From Paraphysomonas bandaiensis (taxonomy: Eukaryota > Protista > Chrysophyceae): a stretch of 64,000 bases of DNA. The stretch spans positions 124,001-188,000 of the forward strand of contig CBFFRP010000263.1 in NCBI GenBank assembly GCA_965644295.1, read 5' to 3'. The position numbers and the translations under genes were made by a program. Below the pieces are notes generated by a model, which was given only the letters and a program-made list of their open reading frames with translations, was not told the origin of the DNA and did no database searches. Each line of letters opens with the position of its first letter. The first letter of the stretch is position 1. Positions 57,517 to 62,804 of the stretch are shown in pieces.

Positions 57517-59129
57517 TTACGAGCCAATACTCTTGAGCGTTTGCCGTGCCAACTGAAGCTTCTGTTCATACGTTAGTGTTGACGGCTGGGACTGCTTCAC
57601 CACCTGTGTATCACTCACTTCAGTTCGAGTCTTGACACGACGACTTCGAGTATAGAGAACAACTGCAGCAGTTACGATGCAGCAGCTGACCAACAGAACA
57701 CAGCCAAAGATTACTGTCATCTGCTGTGCACGTCTTTCTTCCTCATCCCAGAATTCTGTTTCGAGCTTCATAGCCTCACGTTGCTCGAGGAGATGAGAAA
57801 CAGCTTGTTCAATTGCTTCTTCTGGAACAGAAGTCATTGGATCTTCGTCAGCAGCATGTCTGTACGCTGCCCATTGACCTAGGCGTACAGCAGCATATGT
57901 TCCCATTCCTAGCGCTAGTACACCTGCACCCGACAGGGCTCCAAGAGTTGCAATTCCTGCTGCAGCTCCTCCTCCACCAGATGCCAAAGTACCACCACCC
58001 TAAACAAAACCACGCAATGCATAAGCAAAGTTTCATAATACGATAGCATCATCTTCCGTACCCACGACGCAAGAGTGCTCATCATCTGCATATAGCCAGC
58101 ACCGTTTGCAGTGACAAGCGCATAAACACCCGCAGGTGCTACGAGAGTAGCTCCAGTGGCCGCAGCTTTACCCGATACTCCAGCTGAGTCATCAGGTAGA
58201 ACGTAATGCAAACTTCCACAACTATATATAATATCATCATGAACAAGTCAATATCCACTTGATTAGCTTTGTACCTTCCTAGGATGGGAGCTAAGGTGAG
58301 GGCCACTGGACCTGCTGCCATATTGGATATTCCAAAAAGAGAAGCCAGACCAGACTTTGCGCCTATTCCTGCCACAGAGAGAGAAGTGGTCCCAAGAAGG
58401 CCAGTACCACTGGAGGATATGGCAAGGGCGAGTGGAGCCATACGGTGCAAACCCATAGCGGTTACAACTCCAGAATGTGCGGTGACAGAACTTGTTGTAG
58501 CTGAAACACGAACCTGAAGATCTTCTAACTCGTTTATGAGAGCAGAGCGTGATTCAGGATCAGAGAAGAACTCTCTCACCAAACTGTCCTTTAACAATGT
58601 CTGCATTCCGGATACCAGGAGTGACATATATCTTCCTGCTGGCATCTTTGAAGAGATATGTTCCAGAACAATGATATCTACAAAATAATCAACTACGAGA
58701 TAAAAGAATAAGGTATATAGAGTGACCTCGTAGCCATTGTCGCTGATCTTTTTCACTTAAGTCTTCATTAAGAAATCGAGGATGAATCACAACAAAAATC
58801 TCGTACATCATTTGAGTTAAATTTGTGAGGCTTTCTGCTCCTTGAAGTCCTTCTATTAAGGATGCTGCAGTTTGTAGCCGCCCAGCTGATCCCGCTCCCT
58901 GTAATGGTATTGCAAAACTCATACACGATAACATCCATAGCAACAACAATACCAACAGGGCCTCTGTGTTTGCGGCGAGAACGAAGTCAAACATGCGCGT
59001 TCGGACTTCTTCTCTCGCGTGTTCGAGAGCAGTAAGAGTATCCAACTTGGAATCATTGTTTGTGGTTGTAGTGGTAGAGGCATACGACAATGATACCACT
59101 ACAAACAACACTGATACAAAGACCTTCAT
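57517..59129 (-). CDS. Hypothetical secreted/membrane protein with Gly/Ala-rich (glycine-zipper-like) segments and C-terminal TM, multi-exon
   Basis: Signal peptide MKVFVSVLFVVVSLSYAS; several same-strand ORFs separated by short GT-AG introns. Confidence 0.6.
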
Positions 59130-59414
59130 GATGGTTAAGAATTATACGTACCCTCCTTACAAGATTTTAAGCATCGCTGGAGGATTGCTGCAGAAGTCAG
59201 TTGCAGAGCTGCCAACTGACAAATCGTACGAGAAAATGTCTCGAAAATGATTAGAAAATAATCGAACACTTCATTTTGAACTTCACTGACACAACTGACG
59301 AAAAGAACTCACTTCATATCTATAATACACAACTACACGAATACACTGCTGTATACCCGTCTATTTTTGTACAAACAGTGTACACTCTTCTTTGCATATT
59401 TCTCTATAGGTAAT

Positions 59415-60067
59415 ACAAAATGGGGTTATTTTGGAGGTGTGGTCGAAAGAAGTCTCTTTTTTGAAAGAAGAAAGAGCGAAATCATGACCTGCAACAAGTT
59501 TTAACACACATATCACCATATTACACCACAAACCAAAGCATATTATGCGAATATTTTATTGATGTTATGAGTAGTCATCTGTCTCATTATGAATCTGGCA
59601 TAGAAAGTGACTTAGACGTTATTGCCAACTAAGTTGTCTGAGGTGGAACCTCCATATGTTGCCGAAGGGATTCAAGTCAATATAAGAGAAATAAGCGATT
59701 ACAACAAGAAAACAGCATGTCCACATGTTAAAGTGGCATTGGTAGACTCATTTTTTGTTAATGTCAAGTGTGTACTGTACCTGTATGTGACATATGGGTA
59801 CTTATTATCATATATCACATACAGGTACAGTACACACTTGACATTAACAAAAAATGAGTCTACCAATGCCACTTTAACATGTGGAGATGCTGTTTTCTTG
59901 TTGTAATCGCTTATTTCTCTTATATTGACCTGAATCCAAGAATATGCTTTGGTTTGTGGTGTAATATGGTGATATGTGTGTTAAAATTTGTTGCTAGTTC
60001 ATGATTTCATTCTTCTTTCAAAAAAACGACTTCTTTTGACGACACCTCCAAAATAACCCCATTTTGT
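59415..60067. repeat. Nested inverted repeat / long hairpin (MITE-like)
   Basis: Outer arms 59415-59544 and 59941-60067; inner arms 59668-59796 and 59809-59937; 12-nt loop. Confidence 0.9.
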
Positions 60068-61293
60068 CTTATACATAAACAGAGGAGTAACAGTAAAGTA
60101 GACTGTGCACTGTGCGCCCTGATGGGCAGTGAGAATCAGCCGTGTAGTATGTTAAGTCATATACCATATTAGGTGAGCTGATGTCCAATCGAGTTGCTCT
60201 CTGTGTGTTATGAGTAGCCCAGTGAGGCACATGTCCTAGGATAATATGTGGCTGTAACAGCGACTACATTAATTACACTGTTGTAACACGTTTTCAGCTA
60301 TAACGTTGCGTAATAAGAGGTTGGGCTGTGATCCTATGCTAATCTCCAACAATTAAAGCTTCAACGCAATATCCTGCGAATAATGAAACCCTTGGTTATC
60401 ACTGAAAAGCAAGAGTTTTCTTTTTGTACCGTTGATTGTGAAGCTTTTATTTCAATAGTAAATATATGCATACGATATATCACAAGTTAATACCAAATGA
60501 CCTTTCGACCAGGAGCTTTAATTATATTTGCCAGTTATTATATTGAGAACCAGATATATGTACACATTAGAAACACTTATACCAAGTATATCATGACCGT
60601 ATATGTATATTACAGGTGTGGACATATAAATGAATAGGAATGAGTCAATTAGCAGTATTTGATGTGTGATACTGTAATTCACTATCGAGGCTACACGGCT
60701 ACACTATATACTATATAGCACACGTAATACCCAGACGTACAGCCAATTTCAACCATATAATAATATGGGGTCGAATCTACTACGTGCGAATGTATATTTA
60801 GGTATCATATATGCCCCTGAGTCGATCTACTGTACTGGTCCGCAGTAATTTTGTAGCATATATATAATATATACATTATTGAAGCTATTTATGCAGCATT
60901 GTACTTGGTAACTCCAAGGTTAACACTTAATCGTAATACTAATTACTGTTTATACTTACGAGAGGAAAGTAATCTCTTAAAACACTAGATATATCACATA
61001 ACACAAACGAAAGAGACAACTTGAGGTTAGTTGCGAATAAACTACATTTATTATATCAGAAGGTAGATTATAATGGCTGTACAAATGTGATAACATTGCA
61101 TAGTTCTTCGCACGATGGGCACAGCACACTACTCTCATAGGTAACACGAACTTCAATAGGAGAGCGGCATAGAGATATGATGTATCGCACAACACAACAG
61201 CATAAATGACTAGCTAACCAGGTAAGCACACAGGACATGCATCATATCCGTCGTAGCAGCGGAAATAACAAACTCAAGATTGGAGTTGCAAAG

Positions 61294-62302
61294 TTAGCAC
61301 AGAATGCACCCAGGCTGGTACGCCGCGGCCTGCTTAACTTCCGCAAGTCCTTGCTCAGCCCGCTCCCTGGAGACTTCAGTATCTTGTGCAATTTTGTCAA
61401 TGGTGCCTCCTTGGGACTCAACGATATGTGCCATATCCCTATGATCACATGAAATGTGTACATCATTCATTTCACATATACTGAAGATTAGAACTCACCG
61501 GAACATCTCATTTACCATTACGAGGTCATGATTTATTTTCTTAATATCGCGTTCGCGCTCTTCAATAATTGCCATGTCCACATCCTCTCCTTGCAGCATC
61601 AGCTGCTGCTGTTGTTGTTGCTTCCGCTGGGATGAAGGAGATGCGCTATCACTGTTGTCATAGGCTGCAGAAAATGTTTCAGAACTTTTTCCATCGCGGC
61701 TGCCAGGTGCCGGAGAAGAATTGCGATCTACCCTTATAACAGAGTAATTCTTTAGAATATTCTGATAGAGAACTTTCACACGCTCGTGATCCTTTTGCAA
61801 TTTAACAACGCTCACACGACGACCAACAGCCTGATCTCTAGGAAGAGTATTAACTTCTTTGATATGTGCGTCTAACTGAAAAAACAAAAATTAAAACATC
61901 TCATGCCGACACGACTTTCGACCTTGTCTTTCAGTTGCGCTGCTATTCCCTTGAGTACCTTGACATGACTATCTAACCTGCAAGAACAATCATTAACAAA
62001 ATATTATTACAACAGCGTATTACATACTCGGCTTTTGTTGCTGGACTAACTGGACTCTTCCCTGCGGCATCAACTTTCGACTTGACAGTATTACATGTGG
62101 CCTAATATATACAAATGAGATGTACAAACAAACAAACCAGGTCCTATAGTACTTGAAATTTTGTCAAAAGGTCTCCAATTTCACCCACTGCACCATCTAG
62201 ATTGGACCCCGCGGAATTAACGGACGCCCTCTGAGGCATCCTAAACTCATTTGAACTGCCGCCTCTATTATTATCAGATGTACCGAAATCAGTAAACGAC
62301 AT
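61294..62302 (-). CDS. Syntaxin (Qa-SNARE, Syx7/12/Pep12-like) ending in a CaaX motif
   Basis: MSFTDF start; KLQKDHERV (Habc); SNARE motif IIEERERDIKKINHDLVMVNEMFR|DMAHIVESQGGTIDKI...GLAEVKQAAAYQPGCILC*. Confidence 0.88.
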
Positions 62303-62506
62303 TTCTATTCTCTAAGCTTAAAGCTTTCGAGAAGGACTACCTCTAAAATATAGAAAACAAATAATATTGCCCTCTGTCCTAATATACCACAAGGAAAATA
62401 TAATGAGCGAAACCAGAAGAGTAAGCTGCTGTATAGGTATGCATATACACAGGAAGCATACTGCTGTACAGAGGAGAAAAACCAACCAAACATGTGATCG
62501 TACCTC

Positions 62507-62788
62507 TGTATGTATGTATGTATGTATGTATGTATGTATGTATGTATGTATGTATGTATGTATGTATGTATGTATGTATGTATGATCGTACCTCTGTATG
62601 TATGTATGTATGTATGTATGTATGTATGTATGTATGTATGTATGTATGTATGTATGTATGTATGTATGTATGTATGTATGTATGTATGTATGTATGTATG
62701 TATGTATGTATGTATGTATGTATGTATGTATGTATGTATGTATGTATGTATGTATGTATGTATGTATGTATGTATGTATGTATGTATG
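62507..62788. repeat. (TATG)n microsatellite, interrupted by a duplicated atcgtacctctg spacer
   Basis: Two TATG blocks, each preceded by tgatcgtacctctg (~62495 and ~62583). Confidence 0.98.
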
Positions 62789-62804
62789 CATGGTATACTG
62801 GAGT

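Follow-up and report, generated by a model that had tools for sequence, protein, structure and literature searches.

We analyzed a 64,000-nucleotide stretch of Paraphysomonas bandaiensis DNA (hereafter the window) and found on its minus strand, from 62302 to 61294, a five-exon gene whose spliced model translates into a 266-residue Qa-SNARE that lacks a transmembrane (TM) anchor and ends in a CaaX box. The gene is expressed, its unusual ending is deeply conserved, and farnesyltransferase beta and ICMT, both expected to act on such a box, are encoded in the same genome. These observations make it very probable that the product is a farnesyl-anchored syntaxin resembling Syx7 and Pep12, with prenylation and role predicted from sequence. 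The exchange of a TM for a CaaX box is conserved in well over a hundred ochrophyte relatives, diatoms included, and has apparently gone undescribed.

Gene structure and transcripts

Exon 1 of the syntaxin gene (62152-62302; all features of the gene lie on the minus strand) opens with the ATG at 62302 and encodes the N-terminal residues MSFTDFG and the start of the Habc region. It is connected to exon 2 (62026-62100) by the joint 62100/62152, seen in four runs, and exon 2 to exon 3 (61923-61975) by the joint 61975/62026. The joint 61875/61923 leads into exon 4 (61498-61875), which, according to transcripts and profile matches, holds the Hc helix, a linker rich in Ser and Gln, and those layers of the SNARE motif that precede the zero layer, making up its N-terminal half. 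The coding part of exon 5 (61297-61437) contains, as placed by alignment with syntaxin-1A, the zero-layer Gln (61411-61413), the C-terminal half of the SNARE motif, the YQPG linker and the CaaX box Cys263-Ile264-Leu265-Cys266 (61297-61308), the latter read from translation and transcripts and polymorphic at 61304 (Ile/Thr); a TAA stop codon follows (61294-61296). The protein ends 38 residues past the zero-layer Gln, and Cys263 lies 35 residues past it. All four introns have GT..AG ends and measure 47-60 nt. A search of the organism's own genome recovered one copy of the gene, which is intact.

A sequence-only reading of the window had described an endosomal-type syntaxin with a prenylation box instead of a TM anchor, and every part of that description that could be checked here held. 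Minus-strand 61437 to 61294 indeed translates from DMAHIVESQGG to AAAYQPGCILC, then TAA, and the GT-AG intron announced before this last exon, intron 4 (61438-61497, 60 bases), is spliced out in the contigs of four of four runs. The exon itself stands, but its start needed adjustment: 61438, which had been assigned to it, is either the final intron base or the ambiguous G in a split Arg codon. Translation and transcripts agree that the SNARE helix runs straight into YQPGCILC and the stop, without a hydrophobic tail.

Transcripts were checked using Logan contigs from four runs of four studies, one of them a poly(A) marine metatranscriptome, aligned over 59000-62450. Each of the four runs provided one contig of about 1.1 kb lacking exactly the four predicted introns, and these contigs are continuous and jointless from 61437 across the stop to 61031-61079. 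The stop at 61294, for which confirmation by RNA had been proposed, is therefore crossed unspliced in all four studies, and the mRNA ends about 215-260 nt past it. The 5′ untranslated region extends at least over 62303-62383, the reach of the contigs of runs X7 and X8, which start at 62383; the 3′ untranslated region (61031-61293) carries an AATAAA at 61052-61047, and the contig ends between 61079 and 61031 mark approximate transcript ends. We also considered the possibility, raised by the sequence-only reading, that transcripts splice out before CILC onto a downstream TM-encoding exon. There is no joint after 61437, a TM exon downstream of the CaaX stop is absent from the spliced contigs of the four runs, and the three downstream reading frames contain no convincing TM segment within 300 nt of the stop, only a weakly hydrophobic stretch in one of them (approximately 61190-61120). 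Neither this downstream-frame translation nor the contigs aligned over 3.4 kb revealed a hidden TM exon, although rare isoforms can be lost from such contigs.

All four transcript contigs share four differences from the window: at 62194 (Gly37Ser), at 62207 (silent), at 62343 in the 5′ untranslated region, and at 61304, where the minus strand reads C instead of T, resulting in Ile264Thr and an ending CTLC rather than CILC. An ORF from ENA at 98% identity (P0001) ends CTLC as well. The shared differences indicate that the assembly represents a different allele or strain from the sequenced cultures and the environmental RNA, and the commonly sequenced allele ends CTLC. Since a1 is the tolerant position of the CaaX box, both alleles keep the box, with a Cys exactly four residues from the C-terminus followed by a stop.

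Two repeats were noted on either side of the gene. A (TGTA)n microsatellite at 62507-62792 (71.5 copies, one interruption) lies about 200 nt upstream of the ATG, in the presumed promoter region. A foldback (palindromic) element at 59411-60071, 1.2 kb downstream of the stop, has inner arms of 129 nt that are 98% complementary and separated by a 12-nt loop, and outer arms that extend the palindrome; low-depth contigs of run X1 map to it.

Assignment to the Qa-SNAREs

Exon 5 aligns with syntaxin-1A without gaps over 42 residues, from DMAMLVESQGEMID to KYQS, and places its Gln on the zero-layer Gln. Cys263 then falls opposite Ala261 of syntaxin-1A, which we take to lie in the juxtamembrane linker, five residues before the TM. 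The Pfam SNARE model matched exon 5 alone with E = 0.0055, under the cut-off, and exons 1 and 4 searched singly gave no Pfam match; the low SNARE score is explained by a motif that is split by an intron and lacks its TM-proximal part. Searched against the PDB, profile A3 of the family matched Monosiga syntaxin 1 over profile positions 29-257, that is, over Habc and SNARE regions together, as well as the SNARE motifs of syntaxins 13 and 7, the N-terminal domain of syntaxin-12 and Chaetomium Vam3. The Qa identity proposed from sequence alone thus holds on both counts, the gapless zero-layer Gln and the match of the family profile to whole syntaxins.

The nearest TM-bearing sequences are Camelina syntaxin-22, fungal t-SNAREs (Geranomyces, Dimargaris and Coemansia) and a protein of Pigoraptor. 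Clear Pfam Syntaxin_2 and SNARE domains were found in the two that were scanned, P0121 of Geranomyces and P0139 of Dimargaris, and the same two domains appear in the precomputed annotation of Camelina syntaxin-22. An hhalign comparison of a CaaX clade with TM-type, Pep12/SYP22-like proteins gave a probability of 99.5 over 245 columns, from the MSFxD start to a shared YQ. Past this YQ, the TM-type relatives continue with an R/K-rich linker and a TM, whereas the CaaX family has its CaaX box. Both the A3 matches and the N-terminal coverage of the TM-type relatives by hhalign support a predicted three-helix Habc region, and the window protein aligns with its relative P0010 over 233-234 columns. 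The MSFxD N-terminus is common to both CaaX clades (described below) and to TM-type fungal and plant relatives; this Met-Ser-Phe-x-Asp start (62288-62302 in the window) may be an N-peptide for an SM protein.

As for the subtype, the nearest TM-bearing relatives are of the Pep12/Vam3/SYP22 type, which makes the label "endosomal-type" reasonable, but the PDB matches include syntaxin 1 too. Judged by its nearest relatives, the protein is a probable Syx7/Pep12/Vam3/SYP2-like Qa-SNARE.

Conservation of the CaaX box

A word search with exon 5, which covers proteins of 26-82 residues only, returned four exon-like ORFs. Three of them, from JGI metagenomes, are 73-83% identical to exon 5 and end YQPGCIVS, YQPTCVVS and YQPTCVIS; on each of their contigs the entire gene is present, again split into five exons, and what lies beyond it is non-coding and interrupted by stop codons. 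To look further, profile A1, made of exon 4 from three species, was searched against 1.84 billion representative proteins and yielded 166 hits. Nearly all matches that contain the C-terminal half of the SNARE motif end Cys-a-a-X, and TM-bearing ones are found only at low rank. A follow-up word search with 26 full-length members added 112 new sequences among the best 120 of 234 hits; 110 of these 112 end in a CaaX box and the remaining two look incomplete. Altogether, a terminal CaaX is present in 128 of the 142 relatives with a recognizable C-terminal half. Alignments A2 and A3, of 26 and 16 representatives that share only 18-42% identity, have a Cys at position −4 without exception, and the conservation of this Cys seen in them is far beyond chance. 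One relative, P0279 (NCBI assembly GCA_014466275.1), is encoded by an intronless 259-codon ORF that ends with the CaaX box and a stop, so that the ending there is independent of any splicing argument.

The ending would be an artefact if the gene were truncated or a pseudogene, if the assembly were wrong, or if a TM exon further downstream had been overlooked, but this appears exceedingly improbable in this light. Such a view could appeal to the tendency of Logan contigs to miss rare isoforms and to the weakly hydrophobic stretch past the stop, but four independent spliced transcript contigs cross that stop, the ending recurs in orthologues that are 73-98% identical and in over 100 distant relatives, the intronless gene shares the ending, and the window gene is single-copy and intact. 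A recent truncation in this copy, with TM-bearing orthologues elsewhere, is at odds with the same orthologues and relatives. The CaaX box thus stands in place of a TM as a conserved feature, the product of neither truncation nor a hidden splice.

Residue preferences within the box are pronounced. Among the 128 CaaX members, a2 is Ile in 105, Val in 17 and Leu in 6, with Leu in the window protein, and X is Ser in 88, Met in 24, Cys in 14, and Thr and Gln in one each. P0047 and P0055, which have X = Ala, fall outside this regex-defined count, and X is never Leu or Phe in the 128 members or in these two. The residue at X selects the enzyme, Ser, Met, Ala, Gln and Cys being read by farnesyltransferase and Leu and Phe by GGTase-I, and the complete lack of Leu and Phe points to farnesyltransferase and away from GGTase-I. 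The earlier view of X = Cys as a typical farnesyltransferase substrate needs qualification: Cys is accepted by the enzyme, but it is a minority choice in a family where Ser is the commonest. Double geranylgeranylation of CILC in the manner of a Rab CXC ending was rejected because most relatives have Ser in place of the terminal Cys, which is thus unconserved, and because the protein does not belong to the Rabs.

The surroundings of the box are equally uniform. A second Cys within the 12 residues upstream of the CaaX box occurs in none of the 128 members, and the net charge of these 12 residues averages zero, which means that the family has neither a palmitoylation site nor a polybasic patch there. 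The distance from the zero-layer Gln to the end of the protein is 36-45 residues across the family, with a mode of 39, and places the anchor at a fixed distance from the SNARE helix. These observations bear on whether the terminal Cys is prenylated at all. The protein could be soluble, S-acylated, or attached to membranes only via its partners; syntaxins 11 and 19 use palmitoylated cysteines, and a family without a second membrane signal would be compatible with such a state. We nevertheless regard it as very unlikely, because the Cys always sits four residues from the end, a2 is strictly aliphatic, and X is of the farnesyltransferase type without Leu or Phe, constraints that prenyltransferase recognition requires and S-acylation does not need. 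There is also no Cys cluster, and farnesyltransferase and ICMT genes are present in the genome.

Most CaaX members score below the Pfam gathering thresholds for SNARE and Syntaxin_2, which explains their "hypothetical protein" names. One CaaX syntaxin, P0274, is labelled "phage infection protein YhgE" in its source.

Phylogenetic distribution

A tree was computed from 46 CaaX and 8 TM rows, with the anchors left out of the alignment. In it, a branch with SH-aLRT 100 separates every one of the CaaX sequences from the 8 TM rows, a split that also follows organismal phylogeny, given that the TM rows are opisthokonts and one plant. With all CaaX rows on one side of this branch, a single change of anchor suffices. 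Clade A (support 99) includes the window gene and the chrysophyte Chromulina nebulosa, and its member P0010 is, at 46% identity, the nearest relative of the window gene. Clade B (support 99) contains every named diatom: Nitzschia, Pseudo-nitzschia, Fistulifera, Fragilaria, Skeletonema, Cyclotella, Stephanodiscus, Discostella, Coscinodiscus, Chaetoceros, Epithemia, Seminavis, Cylindrotheca and Amphora. A third, small CaaX group contains Phaeothamnion confervicola. The window syntaxin thus groups with the chrysophyte clade, apart from the named diatoms, and searches of its own genome did not find a clade-B (diatom-type) gene; both results agree better with a chrysophyte-like organism. The stramenopile lineage supposed by the sequence-only reading fits the named relatives (diatoms, Chromulina and Phaeothamnion).

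The best reading of these sequence comparisons is that a CaaX-anchored syntaxin would be ancient in ochrophyte algae, to which diatoms, chrysophytes and Phaeothamnion belong. A stronger proposal, that the ochrophyte ancestor swapped the TM of its main endosomal/vacuolar Qa-SNARE for a single farnesyl and that all of its descendants kept the swap, is tentative and in our estimation falls a little short of probable.

Other SNAREs and prenylation enzymes of the genome

All other SNARE loci found in the genome encode a hydrophobic TM right after the motif: two Syx16-like loci, two of plasma-membrane type, Syx5-like and Qc loci, and a further Qa. Some loci form near-identical or similar pairs (C395/C136, C296/C268 and C329/C281; L001-L007; Syx16-like, Qc and plasma-membrane-type), which may be recent paralogues or uncollapsed haplotypes. 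The further Qa-SNARE, encoded by a single exon at C108:173626-174219 (L009), is TM-anchored and very divergent, with a branch length of 7 in the tree. Its hhalign probability against the Pep12/SYP2-type profile is 97.6%, and because of this resemblance the CaaX protein is perhaps not the sole endosomal Qa-SNARE. On sequence similarity, the CaaX syntaxin would be the best, perhaps not the only, candidate for this function in the genome.

Among the enzymes of prenylation, farnesyltransferase beta is encoded on C457 (best PDB match FNTB, 6e-42) and ICMT on C108; the beta subunits of GGTase-I and RabGGTase are also encoded in the genome.

Proposed mode of action

With a Pro-Gly-Cys-aliphatic-aliphatic-X ending in place of the basic juxtamembrane linker and TM helix, the syntaxin would be synthesized as a cytosolic protein, and farnesyltransferase would attach the lipid to Cys263. 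Removal of the last three residues and methylation of the new C-terminus by ICMT would follow, leaving a single farnesyl-Cys methyl ester that could tether the SNARE helix by its end to the endosomal/vacuolar membrane. With no nearby Cys and no basic patch, that is, with no second membrane signal, binding is expected to be weak and reversible, and it may be stabilized by TM-anchored Qb and Qc partners and by SM and tether proteins. Such a Qa-SNARE would be open to recruitment out of the cytosol. Cycling between cytosol and membrane, as suggested by the sequence-only reading, would fit the complete absence of a second membrane signal. We infer the lipid, the compartment and the ability to drive fusion from these features. 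Two points sit less easily with a farnesyl anchor: the Cys at X is a minority residue in the family, and a single farnesyl by itself would provide weak membrane affinity.

Whether such a protein would drive fusion has to be weighed against experiments with artificial anchors. In yeast, Sso2 and Snc1 that carry a geranylgeranyl anchor inhibit fusion dominantly and halt exocytosis after docking (PMC2192637), so a fusogenic role of the CaaX syntaxin is not guaranteed, and lipid-anchored SNAREs failed in early liposome assays (PMC2192637, PMC2185554). The main rival to our interpretation is that the protein is prenylated but non-fusogenic: as a regulator or inhibitor it would compete for SM proteins or for the Qb, Qc and R partners, and fusion would be left to a TM-anchored Qa-SNARE. 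The second, TM-anchored Qa on C108, weakly similar to the same family, could fill that part. We consider this rival unlikely, however, given that the CaaX form is by far the closest in the genome to the Pep12/SYP22-type syntaxins, that MSFxD, Habc and the canonical zero-layer Gln have been kept under long-term purifying selection, and that, in later work, vacuolar and neuronal fusion could proceed with prenyl anchors substituted for SNARE TMs, provided that physiological helpers were present (PMC5349777). A farnesyl-anchored Qa-SNARE that works together with TM-anchored partners remains our preferred interpretation.

Comparison with known lipid-anchored SNAREs

The closest precedent for the anchor is Ykt6, a TM-less SNARE that is farnesylated on a CaaX box, shuttles between cytosol and membranes, and acts in endolysosomal and autophagic fusion (PMC12001115, PMC6464585). 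Like Ykt6, the window syntaxin is a eukaryotic SNARE with no TM and a C-terminal CaaX box, in this case with predicted farnesylation. Ykt6 is, however, a longin R-SNARE with a zero-layer Arg, paired cysteines (CCaaX) and a second lipid, whereas the window protein is of the Qa class, has Gln in the zero layer, begins with an Habc-type region and carries just one Cys at its end. Among Qa-SNAREs, the vertebrate syntaxins 11 and 19 are TM-less and have lipidated cysteines near the C-terminus. The window protein shares with them the absence of a TM from a Qa syntaxin; they belong to the plasma-membrane group, match Pfam Syntaxin and have a Cys-rich palmitoylated tail, unlike the one Cys in a strict CaaX box and the Pep12/SYP2 type seen here. 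A syntaxin-11 cluster was present among the look-alikes in a protein atlas search.

Syx7, Syx12, Pep12, Vam3 and SYP22 resemble the CaaX family over their full length, with MSFxD, Habc and the signature VNE[IM]FKD..[IV]V..Q, up to the YQ. Beyond it, they have a basic linker and then a hydrophobic TM, whereas the CaaX family ends 3-8 residues past this point. The same arrangement of a SNARE motif followed by a prenylation signal in place of a TM has been engineered (PMC2192637, PMC2185554, PMC5349777). Those constructs are mostly geranylgeranylated and often doubly lipidated, in contrast with the single farnesyl-type box of a natural, anciently conserved gene. Finally, Legionellales SNARE mimics and the SNAREs of a few giant viruses are TM-less, end in a CaaX box and depend on the host farnesyltransferase (PMC9546365). 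These are effectors or viral proteins, mostly R-type and with no Habc, unlike the spliced nuclear host gene described here, which has orthologues across ochrophyte algae.

Significance

Full-text searches that covered diatoms, stramenopiles and oomycetes brought up no account of a prenylated Qa syntaxin, a passing mention elsewhere being possible, and a paper on Phaeodactylum syntaxins is silent on both "transmembrane" and "prenyl". As recently as 2022, a laboratory working on SNARE classification gave only the Qbc-SNAREs and Ykt6 as TM-less exceptions among eukaryotic SNAREs (PMC9546365); the CaaX syntaxin family would join them. Much of this family escapes annotation, since most of its members fall under the Pfam thresholds and are filed as hypothetical proteins.

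The need for SNARE TMs has been debated since 2000 with artificial lipid-anchored constructs, some inhibitory (PMC2192637, PMC2185554) and some permissive (PMC5349777). If the stronger proposal of an ancestral swap is true, nature would have provided a counterpart to these constructs: for hundreds of millions of years, an essential fusion machine would have relied on a syntaxin that its lipid anchors weakly and that is recruitable from the cytosol, and that could supply Qa-SNARE on demand to phagosomes, autophagosomes or silica-deposition vesicles. A native CaaX Qa-SNARE in diatoms, which are ecologically dominant and genetically tractable, makes the TM question testable in vivo. Our interpretation also predicts a link between farnesyltransferase activity and endolysosomal traffic in ochrophyte algae.
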